Shown here piece after piece: positions 25,901 through 40,080 of a stretch of DNA of 64,000 bases. Source of the DNA: Trichoplax adhaerens (lineage: Eukaryota > Animalia > Placozoa); assembly GCF_000150275.1 (NCBI RefSeq), contig NW_002060950.1, forward strand, positions 1,104,106 through 1,168,105, written 5' to 3'. The first letter of the stretch is position 1. Every line of letters begins with the position of its first letter. Below the pieces are notes generated by a model, which was given only the letters and a program-made list of their open reading frames with translations, was not told the origin of the DNA and searched no databases. A program made the position numbers and the translations under genes.

Positions 25901-26882
25901 ATTTTTAAAAATTGTATTCGTATCATAAACTGTCGTTTTTAGGACGAATTAGCAGCTGCAGTGCGAGCTCGCATGTTCACATTTCCTATCAAATACGAAC
26001 CTATAAAATGGATGTGTCGAGCCTTACTCCCGAATGGAAAATTATGCCAGAGGCGCGATAGATTTAAGGCAAGATATCATTTTTTCCTTATTTGTAGTTT
26101 GTACTAACTAAATGAGTCTCTTCTTTAACTTAACTTAATAGATGATTTGTAAAAAATGTAATTGTATATATATATATAGTGTCCTTTTCACGGCATTATA
26201 ATTCCCCGCAATGCGAAAGGACAACCTGTCAATCCTGATGGAAGTGTCAAAAAGGACTCCTTAACAGAAGCATCAGCAACTCGAGGTACTGCTTTACACT
26301 GTTGAAGATGTTAAATTAATTTCTTAGTATAGCCTGTAGCAAATATGATAAATAGCAACTACTGTTAATAGAATGAATTTATCCAATGTATTCGCATTTG
26401 CAGAAAGTCAAGCAGGACCTTCTTGGAAAGATATTCAGGAAGAAATTGAAGCTGGCACTGGAATAACTTTTACAAAACCTGGGAAAAAGCGAAAAGGTTG
26501 TCATCAAATTGCTGAGATATCATTTATTGCATGGATATCATGGTACATTAGTAGTAACTCTGAATAAGAGTGACTCATTAGCACTGTCATTTCCGAAATT
26601 AGGAACCAAAAGGAAAAGTAAATCTAATTTAACTAATCTTAAGGAAGCAAAAAATACTTCTCGCTATCGTCTAGAGGATAAAATATTTAAGCCGTAAGTA
26701 GCTCGTTCGTGCTGATTTCACCAACTGCGTCAAATTCTGTGCTCTAACGAATAATATTGTCTGATACTCATACCACCCACAGTTCAGTCGTAAAGAAAAT
26801 GAAGAAAGCGCAAATAGACGAAATGCAAAGGAAAGCTCATGATAAATTTATGCATAATTGGAATTATTCTCTTCGGAAATGA
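22913..26882 (+). CDS. UVSSA: UV-stimulated scaffold protein A (transcription-coupled repair), multi-exon
   Basis: VHS-like N-terminus LSQLITQVTESG...IKKLCR, HAEIRLSAVQVIDELFMRSHTFR, PLPPP, YRKLQLGYVFLK; APVIPFGIDLYHW; zinc finger CRALLPNGKLCQRRDRFK/CPFHGIIIPR; C-terminus DKFMHNWNYSLRK-stop at 26880-26882. Confidence 0.95.
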
Positions 26883-27628
26883 TTCGGTTTAATTGATTTC
26901 TATGACCAATCACAAAGATATCCAAGTATATCATTATGACTGTAAATTAGACTGCAGGCCGTGTAACATTAATTTATCATGCGTAATAAATTATAAATTT
27001 CGTATGTGCAATCTCTACTGGTTACCGGTAACTTACAGCTATTGGCCTGTTGCTAATGTAACCACGCCGATATACAGTATTATAGGGATTAGATTACTAT
27101 CTGCAAATTCTAATTTGAACTGCTGATTAACTACTAATTACTAAATAATTGACAATTCTGATTTGCATGATGTGCATTTGTGCAGATCTTTTATTGATGA
27201 ACTTTCCATTATAGATATATATAATTTACAAATGGAAATTTTGCATGTATATCACATTAACGACCATGTAATATTCATTTTGCTTCTTGTATGTAAATAA
27301 AATGGATTAAAAAAGTAAGATTTTATTGACTCTAGTGCTTATTATGTCTACTGCACACATGCCTGCGGCATATAATTATAACTGATTTCAATTTAGACTT
27401 GCTATACGCATTATTAAGTGTGCGTCTAATATATGATCGACGTGCCCAGCCCGAGAACAATAGACTATTTTTTTAATATTCGCCCTGGTGATAATAATTA
27501 ATAAGCGGCAGTAGTAAAACGGCATTAGCACCTTTCATAATCGAGAAAATAAAATTAATCTGCAAGAATTAGTGATATTCTGTTTTATAATTGATCAACT
27601 GCGCCATTAAATCGAAGTTCAGAGAATC

Positions 27629-29550
27629 ATGTGGAATATGTTAGAGAATTACGTTGATAGCCTTAATCCATCAAGCCTTGCTAGATACATTGAGAAAACC
27701 AAATTAATTGATGGAGCGGATCCGTATCGTATTATGAAAGACCAGTGGTCGACAGATGATAAAGATCTTCCCGATATTACTTACCCGGATATTGTAAATT
27801 ATCTAGTCACAACTGAAAGCTCTTATACATTAGAAGACTTAAAAGATTATAGATCTTTGCAATCCTACAATTACTTTGTATCTGGATGGGTATCCGATGT
27901 AATGCATTGTACAATAAATGACCGATCGATAATTATAGCCAAGGTAAGGATACACTCAATATTTCACACTTGCGTAAGATTATTCGATGCTATCAATAAT
28001 ATTTTAGATGCTCGAAGATTATAACAAGTCATCAGCGGATAATTTAATTGCTTTGCTTTTGCAAGTCTCCTTGCAGAACTCTTTTGTGATACAATTTCGT
28101 ATCAACAAAATTTCTGGCTCAAATCACTTTTACTATTATACAGTAGTACCATCAATTTAAGCATTCGTGTATATGACAAATAATTAGCATTATAATTATA
28201 TAACGATAGGTCCAGCGCTCACTAAATGTTAAAGCTGCCCCATTTTTACCGTGGATAATAACTGAATCGAATGGAGTCATTCGAGCAGCACACTGCAACT
28301 GCATTACAGGTTTAGGAGAAACTTGCAGTCATGTAGGTGCAATACTATTCACAGTTGAAGCAGTTGTAAAAGTACGCCAAATGGCTTCAGTTGTTGATGA
28401 ATCTGCTTACTGGTTAATGTCACATAATGTTCAAAAGATTGAATTTAGCAAAGTGCAAGATATTAATTTCGAATCAACGGAAACATTGAAAAGAAAAAAA
28501 AATCAAAATGTAACTATTTCACCTTTTCCAACTGTAAAATCGTCCAATAAAGTTAAAGTACTAGAAGTTGCACCCCCTACTGAGCAAGAGATGGCAAAAT
28601 TTTTTAGAGAACTGCACGAAAGTAACGCAAAATCAGCTATTCTATCATTAATACCTGAATATTGTCATTTTTATGGCCCTTGCTACTTGAATGGCCCTCT
28701 TCCTAAGTTACTTTGTGATCTTTATGATGAAAATTGGACTAAAATGTCCAAATATGAATTATTTGATTACTGTAAAAAAATTATGCTATCCTTTGCGGTT
28801 ACAGCAGAACAAGCAGACGCTATTGAAAAGGAAACCCGTGATCATGACTCAAGTAAGCAATGGTTAATATTTAGGACTGGATTAATTACGGATTCGAAAT
28901 TGAGAGCAGTTTATAGTGACGATATTGGACAACCATCGATCTACCTACTCAAAAGCATTTGCTATCCGAAAAAAGTAAAGCCTAAACAAACAAATTGCTA
29001 TTGCAACCATCTTAAATTAGCGCATGCACTTTATACAGAGACTATGAAATCGCAACATCAAGATTTCGTCATCTATAAATGTGGATTAATTATCAATCCA
29101 TCTTGGCCATTTCTTACTGCACTTCCAGATTACCTAACTAGTTGTCGATGTTGTGGCGAAGGAACACTTCAATTAAAATGTTTATGCTGTAACAAGCCTG
29201 ATGAGTTGATCGATCCATCTGCTGTTGACAATTGCTTTATTAAAACAGAGAATGGACAAATATTGCTGCGTCAAGATCATCCTATTTACTATCAGATCCA
29301 AGCACAAGTCAATATTTCCAGAAAGGCCTATGCAGATATTGTTGTTATAACCAGTCAATTTACTCATGTAGAACGAAATCAATCCAATACCAGGTTTTGG
29401 GAAATCATTATTAAAAAGGTGATCGACTACTTTCGCTATATTATATTACCTGAATTAACCAGTAAATTCTATACAAGATCAAATTCTAAGTTAGCCATTA
29501 CAGATGATCAAAACAAAGACTTTACAGGCGAAGAAGCGCTACTTAGTTAA
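27629..29550 (+). CDS. ISL2EU-derived SWIM zinc finger + YqaJ/lambda-exonuclease-fold protein, 2 exons (~551 aa), active-site motifs degenerate
   Basis: Exon 1 27629-27943 (PDITYPDIVNYLV...YRSLQSYNYFVSGWV), phase-0 GT-AG intron 27944-28209, exon 2 28210-29550 in frame. SWIM motif AHCNCITGLGETCSHVGA; YqaJ motifs W..FRTGLITDS, GLIINPSWPFLTALPDY, CRCCGEGTLQLKC, YYQIQAQ. Confidence 0.88.
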
Positions 29551-30474
29551 CTCGAATCTAATGATTTGGTTTTGCTATCTCTGGTTATAATCCTGTACAA
29601 TCCAATTATACTATAAGCATTCACTTTTATATTCATTACATGATTAACTAGATCGTAGTATTGACATTAATATCTAGATTATAGAAAAATAGAATGTAAT
29701 ATTAACTGTAACTCAGGATCGAATTTGGTGCAATTTATTAATACTAGTGCAAACTCCCGCCGCTTTGCTGACGAATGAAATAAAATATGTTACTTAAGGA
29801 GATAGGCTCAATGTTTATTTCTTTTCGTGTGATGTACTGTAAATTTAATAGCAACCACTGTACAGTATATGCTCCAACTATTCTAGCTGCACGTATAGAG
29901 GCCATTTCAGATCCTCTATCAAATATTTTTCAAGGTATGAATTATGATCCTGTATGAGACATAACTTTAATTCAATTCAATAAAAGTCTGCAATCGGCTT
30001 TCCTGTTTTTCTTCGCTGTGATCTACAAATATGACTATTTATCATTTGTTATTCCACTTCATATCTAAATCTAAAAGTACCATAAATATCTTCCACTATT
30101 ACTAGATCTAAACCTTTTTAAACGTTAGTAACAGGTGGTAAGTTACTTATGGGAAAGCTTAATCATTTATTGCCCAAAACCATTACGAAATTATTCCGTT
30201 GATCGTCAACCTTTTATTATGATTAAATAGAAAGAGCTGAACAGGCTAATACAATTTATGACATGTATCCAAAATTCTGTTATACGTATACTCGTAAGTA
30301 AATCAAAGTTATGCAAATAATTCAATGCTTGATCTCAAAATCGGTTAAAATCACGGCTGCTAGTTTATTAAGTATAAGATTTCAGCCACCAATTTTTATT
30401 TATTCATTACTTTTGCTATGGCTAGTTTGAACCGAATTCATTCCTTCAATGGGCTTGTAAAATGCGTTGGTTCA

Positions 30475-31848
30475 TTAATTGATTGGCACGATGCATGGGC
30501 ATAAATTAAATAAGGCACAACATACAGTAACTATTTTGTCGATGGAAAGCATTTCTTTATGATCTTGAAAGGTGGATAATTTTAAAGTACTTTGTAATAT
30601 TTTATATTTAAGCCGGATGAAGTCAATGATTCTTTCGACTTGAATTGTAATATGGGCTATCTTCCTTGCTCGTTCAATATCGAAAGCCGGTAATTGATTA
30701 TTACCTTTCGCTGAGTTTGGAGTGATTAGTAATGCTCCTTTTGAGCTTACGCTTTCTGCTATATTAAATCTTCTATCAGCTAAGATAATATCGCCAGGCG
30801 ATAGTTGATCTAATATACCGCAATTTTCAGTAATATGTTTATCAGAGACACGACCACCCCAACCTTGAGAAATAAAAGAAATAGTTCCTTGAGGAGTAAC
30901 ACCAATTAGATATTTAATAGTATTATGCATTTTATAAGGCGACCACGTTTTAGCTCTAGCTAATAGATTGGAAGGGCGTTCTATAAATATTTCAAAGCAA
31001 TCGATAATAACGACGATATCGGAGCCAAAATATTGCTTAAATCGGATCGGCATAGTTCGGGTACGTTGGTCTTTATTAGGCCAAATAATAAGAGGTTTCA
31101 ATTTAATATAGAAAGTATTGAGCATTTCCGATACTATTCTCGCTGAAGTCGCCGCTTTAACGCCAAATCGGTAAGCTAAATCTTCTCCACTTAAGTTTAA
31201 GCGCAATTTCATAAGCACTAGAATAAACTTTTGAAAAGAAGTTAAAGAATTGTTGCCATGATAGGTCACATTAGCTATTGTATAGCGATATATTATCATC
31301 ATCATGTTATAGCCTGGCAGTCCGGTATAATATTCAACTTTTTTCTCTTCCTGAAAAGTCTCTGGTGTAATTTGTAGCCGCTTTAATTGGTTGCTCGCCA
31401 TTGTATTTTCTTTTTGTAATCGTTCTATCTCATAAAATAACTGATAGCAAGCATTAGTAATGGCTTCAATTTGCTTATTGACCTTGATAACACTTGATTG
31501 GGATTCATAATTTTCATCATCTTCTTCTTGACTATCATGATACATTATAGGTTTTATTTTAAGGTAAGCTGCAAGTACTGTTTCTTTCAGTTTTAGATTT
31601 TCTTCAATTATTAGTTGCGTGGCTTTTGTTGCTTCGTTATAGACTTCACAGTCTAACTTTAATGGTAAGGTTGTTAAATCAGCTTCTGGATCAATATCAA
31701 ATTGAAAATTGTTATATGATTTTTCTTGTAACATTTCTCTGAGTTGTAGCGTCTCTTCTTTAAATTTAGTTAACATCTCGAGTTCTGTAGATACCCATTG
31801 CGATTCTTCTTTTTCCGTTGCTACCTCTTGCTTATTGCAATCGTCCAT
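30475..31848 (-). CDS. ISL2EU/Harbinger-type DDE transposase-derived protein (coiled coils + HTH + DDE_Tnp_4-like domain), 457 aa from first ATG
   Basis: Uninterrupted ORF. Motifs KVEYYTGLP, LMKLRLNL...DLAYRFGV (HTH), IIDCFEIFIERPS (D), [37 protein letters not shown] (D), QVERII (E), DKIVTVCCALFNL. Confidence 0.92.
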   Translation of the reverse strand: MDDCNKQEVATEKEESQWVSTELEMLTKFKEETLQLREMLQEKSYNNFQFDIDPEADLTTLPLKLDCEVYNEATKATQLIIEENLKLKETVLAAYLKIKPIMYHDSQEEDDENYESQSSVIKVNKQIEAITNACYQLFYEIERLQKENTMASNQLKRLQITPETFQEEKKVEYYTGLPGYNMMMIIYRYTIANVTYHGNNSLTSFQKFILVLMKLRLNLSGEDLAYRFGVKAATSARIVSEMLNTFYIKLKPLIIWPNKDQRTRTMPIRFKQYFGSDIVVIIDCFEIFIERPSNLLARAKTWSPYKMHNTIKYLIGVTPQGTISFISQGWGGRVSDKHITENCGILDQLSPGDIILADRRFNIAESVSSKGALLITPNSAKGNNQLPAFDIERARKIAHITIQVERIIDFIRLKYKILQSTLKLSTFQDHKEMLSIDKIVTVCCALFNLCPCIVPIN

Positions 31849-32200
31849 GATAATTGTGAATTGCGAGTAGTATGCAATTGAAGTAATCAATGCTAGGACG
31901 TAGTGGTTAGCAACCTGATTGAGAACTTATTTTATGTTGCAATTGATCTGTCTCGCGTTTAAAGACAACAATTCAATACTAATGGCTGAAATTGAAATGA
32001 TTTTGAGGAATTACTCCTTCGTCGATGCTATCATCTTTAACCAATCACTTCGATAGGTAGGTGGAATAGCAAGAGCACTTTTAATCTTTAACTGATTTGA
32101 AATATGCGTTCAAAGACCATTTGAAGGATTTTCACTATTCGCTCTTTTCAAGAGGTAAAATTGCCTTCAGTTCAATTCTAGTTTTTCGTTTACTCCCTAA

Positions 32201-32408
32201 AATGCTTGATTTTAAGATTAATTCAGAAGAATTTCGGTAGATACAGATCGTAGTATTATGCGTATAAATGCATAAAGATATCGAGATGTCGTTTAATATT
32301 ATCTCCAGAATGCTTGATTTAAATACTGATCGGAATAATTGAAGTAGATACAAGTCATAGCATTTTGCGTACAAATGCACGAGGATATGGATCTGTCATT
32401 TAATATCA
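32201..32408. repeat. Degenerate ~107 bp tandem duplication between the two transposase copies
   Basis: AATGCTTGATTT...GTAGATACA...TGCGTAYAAATGCA...TTTAATAT begins at ~32201 and ~32309. Confidence 0.75.
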
Positions 32409-33007
32409 ATTTATTAAGTACAGTGTTTGTCTTATAGTGTTAGCATCTAATTTCATATTTTTTATTGATTAAAGTAGAATATTATTTTATAAATGCAATC
32501 AATAATTACTATGGGGTCATCGTAGGCGTTTAATAAATTCTTAGAAAGCACCAGAATTCATAGCAGAGTTATAAAGCAATAAATTTTTCATTTTAATAGG
32601 CAATAGTAAAAGACTAATTGGAGTAATAGCTTACACACTGTTGTGTAATTTTTACTTGCTATTATCTTACTTAGGAAGATTAATAGATTTATATTGCACA
32701 TTTATTTATAAATCCTTTAAATACTCCTAAAAAGGATGGATTACACATGATTGAATTGTTGCTTTAGCATTTGATGATGCTAGATTACGAACTAGAGAAA
32801 TACTTCTAACCTTACTAATGTCCCCATCTTAACTAGGTAAATTAACAGAGTCATCATATTCCTTCATAAACTAGTAACAAGTATATACGTAAGTAAGGTA
32901 ACAAAGCCATGATTAATGGACGGTAATAGACAAAGATCAATCATAATAATCTTCTAATTTTTCTAATTTCCGCTCGTTACAACGCATAGGTTAGTTAAGA
33001 AATCAAT

Positions 33008-33700
33008 TTAAACTCTACTGCTAGGAATGATCGATGGACAAAAGTTAACTAGAGCGCAACATACTGTAACTATTTTGTCGATGCTTGCTATATCATTATG
33101 AACTCGAAAATAAGTTAATGGCAAAACATCTTGCAGTATCTTATATTTATTACGGATGAGACCAATGATTCTTTCGACTTGAATTGTAATATGGGCTATC
33201 TTCCTTGCTCGTTCAATATCGAATGCGGGTAATTGATTATTACCTTTCGCTGAGTTTGAAGTTATTAGTACTGCTCCTTTTGAGCTTATGCTTTCTGCTA
33301 TATTAAATCCTCTATCAGCTAAGATAATATCGCCAGGCGATAGTCGATCTAATATACCGCAATTTTCAGTAATATATTTATCAGACACGACCACCTCAAC
33401 CTTGAGAAATAAAAGAAATATTTCCTTGAGGAGTAACACCAATTAGATATTTAATAGTATTATGCATTTTATAAGGCGGCCACGTTTTTAGCTCTAGCTA
33501 ATAGATTGGAAGGGCATTCTATAAATATTTCAAAGCAATCGATAATAACGACGATATCGGAGCCAAAATATTGCTTAAATCGGATCGGCATAGTTCGAGT
33601 ACGTTGGTCTTTATCAGGCCAAATAATGAAAGGTTTCAATTTAATATAGAAAGTATGAAGTCCTTGCATAAATTTTCTTGATATTGTAGTACAAGAACAT
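33008..33700 (-). pseudogene. 5'-truncated, frameshifted second copy of the ISL2EU transposase
   Basis: 33164-33655 is near-identical to 30625-31115 but has a 1-bp insertion (~33485) and a 2-bp deletion (~33384). These split it into ORFs 33469-33669 and 33008-33442. The N-terminal half is absent. Confidence 0.88.
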
Positions 33701-34538
33701 TCATTGAGTAGAAAATTACTGAAATTCTTAATACTACATAATGGAAGACTGTGCTCTTCTTACTAATAACGGAATCGAGAGCTTTTCCTACGAAATCAAC
33801 GACTACAGTATCGAGATAATTAAAACAATCTTTTTTAGGGTTTGATGTAGTGATATAAAAATTTGGTTGTGCATTAAAAACGAAATAAATTATCAAGAAA
33901 TCTAAACTTAATATAGCTAGTGTATAGCGCTGTTAAAAGTAGAAATAGATTGTTGAGGATCTCTCAATAACAAATACCATGTATAACACTGACAACGATT
34001 TGTTCAATTATTTTTATTAGGTTAGATGGAAAGTGTGCTTCAATTCATATCCCAATCTCCACTGTATTATTCAATCTTATGTAATCATTTCTTGGAGATA
34101 CGTTTATACTTTGCTTGTTAACCATATCCACATTATCAGTAGGTTATAGTGCTTTATAATCTAAATTCAGTTAACTATTCTTATTCATTTCATTCTGATA
34201 TCAGAACTAATTTTAACTACTGTATTATATTATATAAAAGCAGTTCAATCTTCACTTTTTAAAATATAATTTGGAGATAAACAGTAGAGTTGAATGTTAA
34301 CTGTTCAGTAATTTGCGTATAGCAATCTTTGTAGACTACAATGATATATCATGCTATCATTGTCCAATTCTCTCTATATATAGTTGTGATTATATCCAAA
34401 ACGATGTTATAAATAGCGATAGAAAGCAAACACAATATTAGATTGATAGGATAGAATTGCTATATGATAGGAGTTATGGTCATAGTTGATGCTGACGATA
34501 CCGTAGCATGCCTATGTGATGTAGTAGCTCTCCTGCCA

Positions 34539-37500
34539 TTACCAATTGACTAATCTTTGATTATCGTTAGAATCTCCATTTGAATAATGATATCTTAAAT
34601 TATACAGTCTAGTTGACACATTACAAAAAAAAATAGATAAGACAAAGACAGCAATAGCGAACGTGATTAACAGGATAGTTACCAATATTAAAGCTAGATT
34701 TTTATTCGATATTATTCTATAGGTACTGCTAATATTAATTGATGTCGATGTACTTGATTCGGATGATGTGGCTATTTTTAAATGGCTTATATTAATCTGA
34801 TCGTTAGGTTGCTCACATCGATAGTACTTAACTTGTAGTAATTTCTTCTCGATACCTTTCTTGCATTGATCAGCAGGTAATTTTCGATAGAGCTGGATTG
34901 ATGGCAAAGTTTGGTTACACTTAATATTGTTATTGAATGATGTCGGATATACGCTACAAGTATAGTTATTTTGACTGTTATTGCTATTTATTCTTCGAAA
35001 ACCAAAATTGCACGTGAAATCATCTTGTGTACAAGAACATGCTGTTGTCGATAATAATCCTTGATATCCTGCACGATGGATACAGCAAGAAGTATTTTTA
35101 CGCAATCGATAGCTTTTTACTTGACCAAGGATGCAATGATGCTGATTACTTCGCGTATAACTTCCCGATTTCCAGGTATAATAATCGTTGGTATTACAAT
35201 ATCGTCGCATAATTTTAGAAAAATCCAACGTTATAGCGGACCAGATAGAATGTTGACTAAAATTGCAACTTAACATGTTCAAAACAAGCGATTGATAGTC
35301 TGGATTATCTACTACAAATGTTGCTACACTAGTAACATTCTTAATGTTTAGACGATGCCATTGGTTTCCATTATTACAACTGTAGAGGATACTAATTCCA
35401 TTTCGATTGTAAGCTAACGATGACTTGCTTGTTGCAATGACTGAGCCATAATCTAATAGTGCGTAGGAATAATGATAATCAGATGAAATCTTCCATGTAT
35501 GACCACCATCTTGGGAGATGACTAGAACTTGCTCGAGTGAATTTAGTGATTTCCCGCAGTTTCCGGCTGCTAAGATTAAACCTGGTACTGTAGCACTAGT
35601 AATAATATCTCGAATGATCAACAGCTTTGATGTTCGTTTTAGTTGGATATGTAAGGAACAGTTTGGTAATTGGCAATCTTGGCAATGACCATTAAAAGAA
35701 TTTTGTGGCGGATTAATCAATTGCCAAGTTACTCCTTTATTGAAAGTAATTTTGGTTACAATACCATTCTCTCCATTTTGGTTAGCAAAGTAGGTTCCGC
35801 CCTGGCTATGAACTTTGTAGAAGGCGATACGATGGTTATTAACAGATCTAATTTTAACATTTAAATTGGATAACGATAAGTGAAAATGCGTCCCTTCTCG
35901 ATTAGATATATACAGATGGGTACTCTTATATAGACTATGATGGCCAGCTAATGTAATTACATCTTCACTTGTATCTAAAACCGTGATACCCTAGATTTTG
36001 ATCCAAAGAATAGCAAGTTAATAAATTTATTGCAATCGCTAAATAAATTCCAAATTGTAAGACGACCTGTATTACCTGTAATAACATTTCACTAGGCAAT
36101 GTGGCTAAATTGAATAATTTACGATCGTAAGAAACATATAGTCTAACATTGTTTCCATGTTTCTTCTATAAGTGTATCGAAATGCAAAAGTCCGTTTTAT
36201 TTGTCAAACAAGTGGTTGAAAGCATTCATTTAACTTATTCTTACGTTTGCTGCGAAAAAAATTTAAATATTTCAACTTACTAAGGCGATCACGTATTTCT
36301 CTTTTACTATTAGGCTGTCAGCTAAAATAGATGTTAAACTGGTCTGCCATAGGATACTTGTCGATGTACGGATAATATACTTGTAGATATTAGATGTCAA
36401 TTTTGAACTGGCTTTTTCGTAATAAATAATTGCCGGGTCAATATCTACTTTGGGTACACCCCTAAAATTTTGGACATAAAGAGAAGAATCAAATGTAATA
36501 TAAATATGCTATAAACTGAATTATTTCTTTTTTACTCTTTGATCGACAGAAACTGCAAACCGGTAACTAAAAATAATTTATGTTACAAACTCTCACCAAA
36601 AGTATCGATTGACGCCTGTATCGATCAAATTCCATGAAAAACCAAAGTTCTTAGATATGTAAAGCTATGCAGTATAATTATGATTACAATAATAAATGAA
36701 AATGATTGCAGGATATCGAGTTTTTGCAAAACTTTTACATTATTATACTGCACTTAAATATTGAAATTTACTTTACTATATTAAGTGCATCTGCATATGT
36801 ATAATAAACACTCGGTAGTAATTTGTCACTAGTGGTAGTTTCTTAGCAAATTATTACTTCTACAATATTTTAAAGTACGTAGGTGCCAAACTGCATTGCT
36901 ATAAAAATGAGTAGCTTAGCATACTAAAGATAATAAATGATGTTTAGATTGAACATTTCGATCTTGGGATGATTACATAGTTTGAGTATTGCGTCTAATT
37001 AGTAGTAAGATATGTTATAATAAAATCTTCAAAGATGTACGATACCTTTTTTCTTCTACTGTCGCAGCCTAGCAGCCACGTTGAATACTGAGGACTAGGG
37101 TGGAAGATGAGTTTTACAGGATTAAATGGTACTTTTATCACTGCGGTAAACGTTTTCGCTGAGTTATGCGAAAGAAGAATGATTCTGCAATGGCTACAAG
37201 TAATGATAATCTAAGATTGAAAAAAGAATGAATATGATTCAGTTTGCTTAAAGTTTAATCTATCATGAACGTAACTAAGATTTCATTTTATTTTATCATT
37301 TCGTAGGTGGATTGTAAGTTAGGATATAGATACGCTTTAGAATGGATGAGTGCAAGTTTCTTACCACATTGCCATTATAGAGATTGATATATAAGTACAG
37401 CTCAATACGTACAGTATATAATTCAAATTGGATTGTTACCTTACTACCGTTATGGGGGTTTCGATATAACTTTCGTAATTTTCGACATCTTTCCGGTGGC

Positions 37501-38470
37501 TTTATGACATCATAGCTGAGGCCCCGATCTTCAGATCTGATTTTTTAAAGAAATATTGGCAACTCATTTCTTTATTCAATTTCTAGGTAATTTATTATAT
37601 TGAAATATCTAGCTTATATCATAGATGTAGTCAAGAAGGAAACTTTAAACTTTACTTTATTAGTTGTTCTTCTATCGATACTGAAGTAATTCGCTAAACA
37701 GTGAATCAACATTTCAGCAAATATATACGATTTAAAACTAATCAAGCTAATAACATTTTCTTAACCTGAATATTCTGTTTCGGAATGGGCTCAATCTGCT
37801 GTTGTATTTCTTGGATAAAATCACTATAATCTGAAGATGTGATCAAAAATACGATTAAAGCAAAGGATATCATTTTTAATCAACACATTTATTACAGAAA
37901 ACTTGAATGGCTATAATGGTTATTTTTGACAGATAATGCATAATTTATGACTTATTTCCAATCGTTTTAATCGACGATTACTTCTAATCATAACTCTAAT
38001 TTTAATCCATCGAACAGTATGCAATAAGGCTGTTACGGCAAATTAATTCGATATGCTAGTAATTTATTACCATAACAGTACTATATGTCGTTTTCTTTCA
38101 GCAGCTAGCTAAATATAATGCTTACAGTTGGAGAGATGAGTTATTTAAGTTGTCGATTATTGTCAATTTCTCTTACATTATGCCTTTCTCCCGTGTAGTA
38201 GATGGAAATCGAAGGCCCAGATTGATTCAGTTTGGTGATTGTCACTAATTGATCGATATCAAAACTTTCAATGATTTTAGTCAAATTGTCCAGTTTACTT
38301 TTTTCGACCGATCGAGTTCGTCGTTTGATAGAGTTGGAGCTCTTCTGAAGCCATTTACTTCTATTTAATTGAATTTCAGTTGTTTCCAGTTCTTGTCCAG
38401 TATTTACCTCCATATCCACGCAGGAAGATAGGGCTAGAATAACCACCGCGATATTAAATCGCTTATTCAT
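34539..38470 (-). CDS. Vps10p-domain receptor (SorCS/sortilin family), multi-exon, type I membrane protein
   Basis: Signal peptide MNKRFNIAVVILALSSC; furin-type site KRRTRS; Asp-box repeats (SKNFGFSW, TFNKGVTW, SQDGGHTW, SCNNGNQW); CSLHIQL and PGLILAAGN motifs; 10CC cysteine module; Ser/Thr stalk, TM helix and short tail. Large terminal exon 34539-35990. Confidence 0.9.
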
Positions 38471-40080
38471 TTTTCTGATTCACAATACGCCTTGAAGACC
38501 AGATCTACTTTGCCGAAAGGTTGGAAGAATACGTCTTAGAGCTGCTTGTTCGCAGTTTTATAAGAACTTTTTGCGCACTGGAAGCTCATTTATATTGTAT
38601 ACATAGTGTTTTAATCGCCGTCTCTGTTTTCAGCTTACGCTAATAACGATATGAAGTAAGTTACACACAGTACCCTATACTAGTTATCCACTAGCAGGGC
38701 AATCAAGTTAAAATACCAGTAGCAACGCTAACTACTATGCACTAGTTAGATATTTCAATGGGAGCCACAAAAAGAAGCCAATTAAAATACGTTGAGAGAG
38801 ACTGCACCATCCATGTTTGAGTATGCTTAATGAACAGACGACATTTCCTTCGTTTCCTATGTGCTAATAATCTGTACACATTCAATTCAAGATCATTCAT
38901 TATCATCTTATAAAGAAAGAATTAGTTTTATTTTGTATGCCCGTGCGATAGACTTATCTAGTATCTTGATTCAATTTATTTTTTCGCAGGGTATACTGGT
39001 ATTCGATGTTGCATCGGACTTAGTAATAGAAAGTATGAACTTAGCATTGATAGAAATAGCTATTAGTGAAATTGATAAAGGTTATTTGCCTCAATGTTTA
39101 CCTACTACGTCGTATAAACTTTGGCAGATCAGTGGGTATCCCAAGAATAAATTAAATTAGATTAAAGGCAGTGCACCAATCAGTTGCTGTACGAATTAGA
39201 TGGAATGTAGAAAGGATAGTTTGCCAAGTTGTTTTTATCCAATACTAATATCTAACGCTACCAGATATCTTTGGCTGAAAATTTATTTTTGGGGAAATGG
39301 ATCCATTAATTCATGAATTCTCCAATCCCTCATAGGAAAGGTACACGAGTATTTCATTTTTTAATTTTGTAGATATTCTAATGCAGTCATAGTTATAATG
39401 GAATTTTCGGCTCTATCAATTGTAGTGAGTATTTCTTTATCCATGCTGATGAATATTCTGTTTCAGTACTGCGGATCAAGAGCGAGTTGACACTGCACTA
39501 TTTCAATACGAGTCCTTGAATGAGTAATGACAAATGAGAAGCGATCAAATTTGAAATGGCGTAACTTATTTATCAGTGTTAGCGTTTTAAATTACTTCTC
39601 CGATGGTATTGAAGTCAAGCGCTTTATACTGTAGGTGTGGACGTTTTGGGAATGATCCAAATCAACGAAATGATTTTTGATTCAGTAAAGTTTCTTAATT
39701 CTGCCACAACTCCAGCATCAAGATTGCTCTTATATTTATGTAGTTCATTCTAATATCTAAATTACTTCACTTTCCTATCAGATTGGTGTTTTCGAAACAC
39801 TTTGCGATCAATATGATTGTAATAGTTACCTAGGAACATACGGGAGAACTGATCAACTATATGGGACGGTACTGGACGTTATTGCATTCTGATTTTCTAT
39901 CTGCTTGAAGAAATCTTGCGCATTTCTAGTACATCGAGAGAGCCAAAGTGGTATTCATTTCATAAGCAATCGAAAATTGAGCGAAATCACTGCTGTAATA
40001 ACTTCGACATGTTGATGTTCTGTTAAATTTATCTGTTATGAAAACGGAGTAGATAGATCGAAATTGACTAGTCAATACTA

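Follow-up and report, generated by a model that had tools for sequence, protein, structure and literature searches.

The genome of the placozoan Trichoplax adhaerens (105.6 Mb in 1414 contigs, ~33% GC) carries two convergent genes of transposon type between UVSSA and a sortilin-family gene, and the question raised by this locus is whether they are the relic of a transposon or have been retained as host genes. The stretch of DNA analyzed (hereafter, the window) covers 64,000 nucleotides (nt), from position 1,104,106 to 1,168,105 of contig NW_002060950.1 (assembly GCF_000150275.1), and the pair occupies window positions 27629 to 31848. One gene encodes a protein with a SWIM finger and a lambda-exonuclease-like (YqaJ-type) domain, and the other encodes a transposase. 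By its gene content and layout the pair derives from an ISL2EU element; it is immobile, is present at the same position in the sister lineage Trichoplax sp. H2 (T. adhaerens being H1), and is depleted of nonsynonymous changes in both genes. What the data show is how the pair is built, in how many copies it occurs, its synteny over a shallow distance, the constraint on it and the fold of the nuclease domain; a host function is inferred. The SWIM/YqaJ gene has probably been retained by the host, and its domestication is better supported than that of the pair; co-domestication of both genes is plausible, if short of probable.

The initial annotation of the locus had described two long intact convergent frames (~551 amino acids (aa) after splicing, and 457 aa), separate AATAAA signals in the gap between them, and a host-like base composition. 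Both frames were recovered, and the features of the locus are as follows:

27629..27943, plus strand: SWIM/YqaJ gene exon 1, aa 1-105, N-terminal domain running into the SWIM finger (open reading frame and splice model)
27944..28209, plus strand: SWIM/YqaJ gene intron, GT..AG, 266 nt, phase 0
28210..29550, plus strand: SWIM/YqaJ gene exon 2, aa 106-551, with SWIM, linker and lambda-exonuclease-like domain
~28294-28332, plus strand: SWIM motif CxC...CxH (CNC...CSH), in exon 2
28429-28683, plus strand: predicted transposase-binding linker, aa 179-263 (from the predicted complex interface)
28792-29469, plus strand: lambda-exonuclease-like domain, aa ~300-525 (Pfam, family profile, AlphaFold2 (AF2)/Foldseek)
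29128..29178, plus strand: nuclease motif region, with D412 (29128-29130) kept, Q426 (29170-29172) in place of the Glu of ExK, and K428 (29176-29178) kept
29551..30474, no strand: intergenic gap of 924 bp between the convergent genes, with separate poly(A)-signal hexamers for each strand
30475..31848, minus strand: transposase gene, single exon, 457 aa, HTH_Tnp_4 and DDE_Tnp_4
aa 1-140 of the transposase, minus strand: orphan N-terminus, with zero relatives in the database search
31251-31093, minus strand: HTH_Tnp_4, transposase aa ~200-252 (Pfam)
31005-30505, minus strand: DDE_Tnp_4, transposase aa ~282-448 (Pfam)
31002-31000, 30777-30775 and 30636-30634, minus strand: transposase catalytic codons D283, D358 and E405, respectively (family alignment)
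30771, minus strand: G360R, a change in H1 only (H1/H2 comparison)
33019..33690, minus strand: broken, 5'-truncated transposase paralogue matching aa 248-457 (tblastn pieces with TGA stops and frameshifts)

Interval 27944-28209 is the sole GT..AG pair of such length that yields one open 551-aa frame. The product of this frame is the database protein TRIADDRAFT_58549 (XP_002114575.1; record P0129), in which the N-terminal domain is followed by the SWIM finger, a linker of ~150 aa and the lambda-exonuclease-like domain. The transposase (P0001) matched the Pfam domains DDE_Tnp_4 (E=1.5e-50) and HTH_Tnp_4 (E=2.1e-16), and the only protein close to it is RDD42710.1 from Trichoplax sp. H2 (P0121), from which it differs by 3 aa. 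AATAAA was seen in the gap on the plus strand at 29779 and 29979 and on the minus strand at 30395 and 30364, among other sites, and the GC content of the gene pair (33–34%) equals that of the flanks. The pair is flanked by two host genes, UVSSA, whose end lies near 26882, and the sortilin-family gene at 34542-38476. Two repeats were observed within the locus. Positions 29732-29773 in the gap hold a ~40-bp GC-rich dispersed repeat with at least 40 genome copies, which differs between H1 and H2 by a 31-nt indel and clustered substitutions, and whose 31-mers showed very high depth in all four sequencing runs compared; positions 32194-32406, upstream of the transposase start codon, hold two tandem copies of a ~107-bp unit, which are ~77% identical.

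ISL2EU elements are defined by a transposase with THAP, helix-turn-helix (HTH) and DDE domains, a YqaJ second gene, AT target-site duplications, terminal inverted repeats (TIRs) starting with GG, and a length of ~4.8 kb (PMC4482050; PMC4122938). THAP is the N-terminal DNA-binding domain of their transposases (PMC4122938), and the role of the YqaJ gene has been stated as unknown (PMC4482050). The derivation of the pair from ISL2EU, which the initial annotation had proposed, is borne out because a transposase with HTH_Tnp_4 and DDE_Tnp_4 faces a SWIM/YqaJ gene in a layout that fits the published definition and is shared with a THAP-containing ISL2EU copy of Mytilus coruscus (same convergent order, gap of 1.16 kb) and with a second ISL2EU-type locus of Trichoplax, on contig C1400 (same convergent layout, gap of ~0.9 kb). 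At C1400:1043900-1050300, the THAP frame is open but the DDE part carries a frameshift and a TGA stop; the convergent SWIM/YqaJ frame (410 aa, with a distant exon 1) is open, as it is in the UVSSA-sortilin pair. Since its proteins show only 47% and 27% identity to those of the pair, C1400 is, on this comparison, a separate ISL2EU lineage, either older or different. ISL2EU-derived sequence in Trichoplax is not new, because the inactive transposon remnants that Wang et al. (2010) listed for this genome already included two ISL2EU matches (6071 bp; PMC2871265).

The UVSSA-sortilin locus is not an autonomous member of ISL2EU, because THAP, TIRs and target-site duplications, and copy number were each tested and each set it apart from such elements. 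Both flanks were searched for TIRs and an AT target-site duplication with a repeat finder and by exhaustive pairwise comparison, which returned chance-level matches only, none with AT flanks, although very short TIRs could escape such a search; this agrees with the earlier statement that no TIRs were recognisable. The candidate ends 27485/32308 (13/16 matches, spanning 4.8 kb, the usual element length) were rejected because of their chance-level score and the lack of an AT duplication. THAP was not found in the transposase protein by Pfam or family alignment, and neither a THAP relic nor a C2CH frame was found in the 26.8–34.6-kb region; transposase aa 1-140 had no relative among 1.84 billion representative proteins. 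With regard to copy number, interval 26883-34541 (7.7 kb) proved unique in the genome except for the ~40-bp repeat at 29732-29773. Protein searches of the genome matched just this locus, the adjacent fragment and C1400, and further copies, non-autonomous derivatives and repeated termini were absent from the 105.6 Mb. The ISL2EU pair at this position is immobile, and its transposition activity has presumably been lost. Compared with autonomous ISL2EU elements of the PHIS / PIF-Harbinger-like group (Han et al. 2015, PMC4482050), it shares a transposase with HTH and DDE_Tnp_4 (at most 54% identity to mollusc copies) and a SWIM/YqaJ second gene that is convergent across a ~1 kb gap, as in the Mytilus element. 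In contrast to them, it has no THAP, no GG... TIRs and no AT target-site duplication, is present in single copy, and shows an orphan N-terminal stretch of 140 aa, an altered nuclease motif and nonsynonymous depletion in place.

In Trichoplax sp. H2, the locus is collinear (UVSSA, YqaJ, transposase, sortilin) and 99.1% identical at the nucleotide level (0.9% diverged). Hence, the UVSSA-SorCS position, at which orthologues in related species were to be sought, is occupied in the sister lineage. Changes between H1 and H2 were counted in both genes and compared with the numbers expected from the local H1-H2 substitution rate of 0.84%:

Transposase: 3 nonsynonymous changes observed against 9.1 expected (P=0.02); 2 synonymous changes observed
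SWIM/YqaJ: 5 nonsynonymous changes observed against 11.0 expected (P=0.04); 4 synonymous changes observed
Both genes: 8 nonsynonymous changes observed against 20.1 expected (P=0.002); 6 synonymous changes observed against 5.2 expected

The corresponding dN/dS was ~0.35 for both genes (0.39 for the transposase and 0.33 for SWIM/YqaJ), so that the ratio, on small counts, is not near 1, the value that the initial annotation had named as contrary to its proposal. This depletion speaks for constraint, because orthologous copies of a dead transposon should evolve neutrally, and it indicates purifying selection on both genes in place, within the small counts available.

A deeper relative was obtained for the SWIM/YqaJ gene. 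A search of the Logan assemblies with exon 2 detected a 444-aa protein with 62% identity in three runs (P0123, P0128, P0127). Adjacent public runs L012 (SRR30664516) and L015 (SRR30664517) contain AT-rich contigs with an intact SWIM/YqaJ relative, the copies of which differ by one residue. The L012 contig (33% GC) includes the tail of exon 1 and an intron with GT/AG signals at the identical position and phase. The relative shares the odd motif variants RTGLI.DS and KCLCC with the Trichoplax protein, at which the transposon homologues (at most 42% identity) differ. Its coding sequence stands at a distance of 28.5% from the Trichoplax gene, and the mean distance of Trichoplax-Hoilungia orthologues is 28.5% (PMC6067683). 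NG86 estimates for Trichoplax versus L012 were dN 0.25, dS ~1.8 and omega 0.14, and the SWIM, linker and nuclease parts were alike in this respect. By its distance, GC content and intron position, the L012 gene would fit an orthologue in another placozoan genus; the contigs that carry it are 2–3 kb long and include no flanking genes. A metagenome scan with the placozoan YqaJ alignment yielded zero relatives.

The initial annotation had called the YqaJ nuclease dead. In Pfam, the SWIM/YqaJ protein matched Viral_alk_exo (E=1.5e-4), and the SWIM/YqaJ family profile matched LHK-Exo 3syy (E=3e-9), each motif finding its counterpart in LHK-Exo and lambda exonuclease. Modelled with AF2, the nuclease domain had a predicted local distance difference test (pLDDT) score of 80–94, and its top Foldseek matches were 3syy (E=4.8e-7, target TM 0.66) and 1avq. 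The lambda-exonuclease fold is predicted to be kept. D412 and K428 are also kept, but Gln426 replaces the Glu of ExK in both H1 and H2, which leaves the PD-(D/E)XK triad incomplete; in addition, the Ser before PD is Leu, and ITAS reads ITDS. At the Q426 column, Glu is found in relatives P0123 and P0128 as well as in the transposon homologues. Because the more distant relative still has this Glu, the alignment places the E-to-Q change as specific to Trichoplax H1/H2. Judged by these residues, nuclease activity has probably been weakened or lost; the earlier description is plausible for H1/H2, though overstated in that the fold, Asp and Lys are kept, and it does not extend to the gene beyond H1/H2. 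Relative to the PD-(D/E)XK nucleases lambda exonuclease, YqaJ and LHK-Exo (PDB 1avq, 3syy), the Trichoplax domain has the same fold and the same motif order (R..G.ITAS, SPD, ExK, Y.Q.Q). It differs from these nucleases in the three substitutions just named, in a Cys-rich insert around the motif, and in its position within a fusion protein, where a SWIM finger and a long linker precede it.

Co-folding of the two proteins, which had been proposed as a check for a two-protein complex, was performed by predicting the complex of full-length P0129 (551 aa) with residues 10-457 of P0001. The ipSAE was 0.80, against 0.00 for the best control; of 78 solved complexes, 51 attained this mark, as did 2 of 108 mismatched pairs. 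Complex runs agreed in at least 86% of contacts, with a partner pLDDT of at least 69. In the predicted interface, residues 179-263 of the YqaJ protein meet transposase residues 178-189, 244-268, 292-342 and 424-456. The two proteins are thus predicted to bind, and the model supports binding that may also occur in vivo. The interface residues of the linker are 74% identical in the distant relative versus 61% in the rest of the protein; this difference does not reach significance and carries no weight in the argument.

Transcription, also among the checks proposed initially, was examined in assembled contigs of small runs, X8 being a declared RNA library. Four low-depth contigs (~3x) from X8 and X9, representing two studies, lie on 27419-28590, including 27600-27860 and 27419-27620. 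Transcription of the SWIM/YqaJ gene is weakly suggested by them, and that of the transposase is not shown. The UVSSA 3' end was covered at 58–133x, that is, 20–50 times deeper than the SWIM/YqaJ contigs. At window positions 27000-27326, these UVSSA contigs stop at ~27224 (X8) and ~27326 (X9). The stops probably mark the end of the UVSSA 3' untranslated region, 300–400 bp past the stop codon and ~300 bp before the start of SWIM/YqaJ. Runs X4 and X6 were rejected as transcription evidence, since they covered the intron and the intergenic DNA evenly and carried H2 alleles, a DNA-like pattern.

A series of observations weighs against co-domestication, and most of them concern the transposase. D283, D358 and E405, which are invariant in the family alignment, are all present in the Trichoplax protein, and the H2 transposase keeps 78 of the 88 positions at which nine homologues from other phyla never vary, versus 49 of 73 family-invariant positions in the C1400 pseudogene. 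Hence, for the transposase, the initial claim that mobility-related residues or domains had been lost holds for THAP but not for the catalytic core, and the intact triad and retained residues would also fit a young or still competent transposase. The losses at invariant positions cluster near E405 (T380A, K383N, R401T, G409D, P423K). R401 lies four residues before E405, and in IS4-type enzymes an Arg so placed contacts the transposon end. Two nonsynonymous changes within the DDE domain are derived in H1; one of them, G360R, occurs in H1 alone and alters a family-invariant Gly next to catalytic D358. In the protein collection, the only transposase orthologue above 54% identity is that of H2, and no transposase was found in the 1.3 kb downstream of the distant SWIM/YqaJ relative. 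P0003, the best non-Trichoplax match (Logan, 54% identity), was rejected as an orthologue, since it lies on a contig of 42% GC and resembles a consensus transposon copy; a metagenome scan with the transposase yielded zero relatives. In the small-run assemblies, the transposase had zero RNA contigs, and intron 27944-28209 had no spliced read, contig or junction; the support from the four SWIM/YqaJ contigs is thin. Few changes separate H1 from H2, the conversion zone described below holds three of the five that affect the transposase, and a binomial test against the genes' own synonymous changes gave P=0.05 only. The predicted binding would be expected for transposon partners too, and does not separate the readings. 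For the SWIM/YqaJ protein, the term "dead nuclease" rests mainly on one E-to-Q change specific to Trichoplax; such a state is plausible there but is not an old feature of the gene.

The conversion zone involves the broken fragment at 33019-33690. This fragment, which like C1400 is missing from the initial annotation, lies 1.2 kb from the transposase gene on the same strand, corresponds to its last 210 codons, is 5'-truncated, and contains stops and frameshifts, which is a further point against the retention of both genes. It is 96.5% identical to the intact gene over 31118-30626, and 69% identical over the last 148 bp (30625-30478). In a four-way H1/H2 alignment, the H2 fragment matches the gene at five consecutive sites in 30750-30688 where the H1 fragment does not, and site 30685 is swapped between gene and fragment. 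Because this pattern of sites carries its signature, ectopic gene conversion between gene and fragment is read from the alignment as having occurred after the H1/H2 split; the zone covers window positions 30685-30837 and 33224-33376. Conversion makes the fragment look more divergent between H1 and H2 (1.8%) than it otherwise would, and it complicates any simple dating of the duplication. Since the unconverted tail is just 69% identical, gene and fragment are, on this comparison, old paralogues or come from different elements.

In one alternative, only SWIM/YqaJ is a host gene, and the transposase is a passenger still short of decay, its frame maintained in part by chance and by sequence exchange with its neighbour, and would be heading towards the condition of C1400. 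There, an open SWIM/YqaJ frame is accompanied by a transposase that is frameshifted and interrupted by a stop. Next to the YqaJ relative at a Hoilungia-like distance, the canonical spacing leads to no transposase, and the search for transposase orthologues was likewise negative. The H1 changes in the DDE domain and the zero RNA contigs also agree with a passenger. However, if the insertion predates the split from the distant relative (dS ~1.8), an AT-rich frame of 1374 nt should not survive without selection. Moreover, the transposase taken alone shows nonsynonymous depletion (P=0.02), and the predicted interface joins its C-terminal tail to the YqaJ linker (for which the identity difference noted above is not significant). 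We consider a passenger transposase rather unlikely. A low-copy ISL2EU lineage that persisted vertically and is recently extinct, or rarely active with short ends, so that neither gene has a host function, would agree with the inactive remnants of Wang et al. (PMC2871265), the intact catalytic triad, the adjacent fragment and second locus as typical transposon debris, TIRs as short as 6 bp that could escape detection (PMC4482050) and the weak 4.8-kb end pair 27485/32308 (chance-level and without AT duplication), but it is improbable in view of the depletion of nonsynonymous (P=0.002) and not of synonymous changes, where dead copies should evolve neutrally, the lack of further copies, non-autonomous derivatives or repeated termini in 105.6 Mb, the orphan sequence in place of THAP, and the YqaJ omega of 0.14 across a genus-level distance.

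Co-domestication, the reading that we prefer, retains from the initial proposal the ISL2EU origin, immobility, synteny with H2, dN/dS of ~0.35 and predicted binding, but not the loss of transposase residues, which are largely intact; no transposase orthologue was found beyond H1/H2. Retention of the transposase as a functional partner is favoured by its intact frame, its nonsynonymous depletion in place and the predicted binding; it is less sure than retention of SWIM/YqaJ, because the transposase has no deep orthologue, no RNA, catalytic-domain changes in H1 and conversion with a pseudogene. We propose that one ISL2EU transposon inserted between UVSSA and the sortilin-family gene in a placozoan ancestor, and that its ends and the THAP domain of its transposase were then lost, which would have abolished mobility. 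Since then, Trichoplax would have maintained both genes in single copy for host use. The SWIM and YqaJ protein has a predicted lambda-exonuclease fold in which Gln replaces the metal-binding Glu, Leu the pocket Ser and Asp the Ala of ITAS, and would through these changes probably have become a weak or non-cutting DNA-binding partner. Its linker (aa 179-263) may clamp the DDE core and the C-terminal tail of the THAP-less HTH-DDE transposase, and together they would form a heterodimer comparable to HARBI1-NAIF1 or ALP1-ALP2, in which a YqaJ-type protein takes the place of the Myb-type partner. More tentatively, it is possible that placozoans have recruited ISL2EU transposons as host genes on one occasion or even two, and that both products survive at this locus as a heterodimer, with a nuclease-impaired SWIM/YqaJ protein predicted to clamp, by way of a conserved linker, a THAP-less but DDE-intact transposase.

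If true, this would be the first host gene pair derived from ISL2EU; our literature search found no described host gene of this origin, and no paper was found under the gene identifiers or the run numbers. It would also provide the first structural hypothesis for the ISL2EU second gene, namely transposase binding, and the predicted interface between linker aa 179-263 and the transposase core and C-terminal tail makes the partner function directly testable. The intact pair at this locus, the pair with a broken transposase at C1400 and the solo gene in the distant relative form a natural series. Joint recruitment of a transposase and its partner would be extended to another partner type, in one of the most transposon-poor animal genomes. 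Co-domestication of two-gene DDE transposons is known only from PIF/Harbinger elements with a Myb-like partner. Like HARBI1-NAIF1, ALP1-ALP2, HDP1-HDP2 and the insect DPLG pairs (PMC7282668, PMC9710019), the Trichoplax locus keeps both transposon genes, immobile and in single copy, and binding between its transposase-derived protein and the second gene's product is predicted. It differs from these pairs in that the partner is a protein with a SWIM finger and a lambda-exonuclease fold rather than a Myb/SANT protein, and in that the two genes still lie next to each other at the original insertion.

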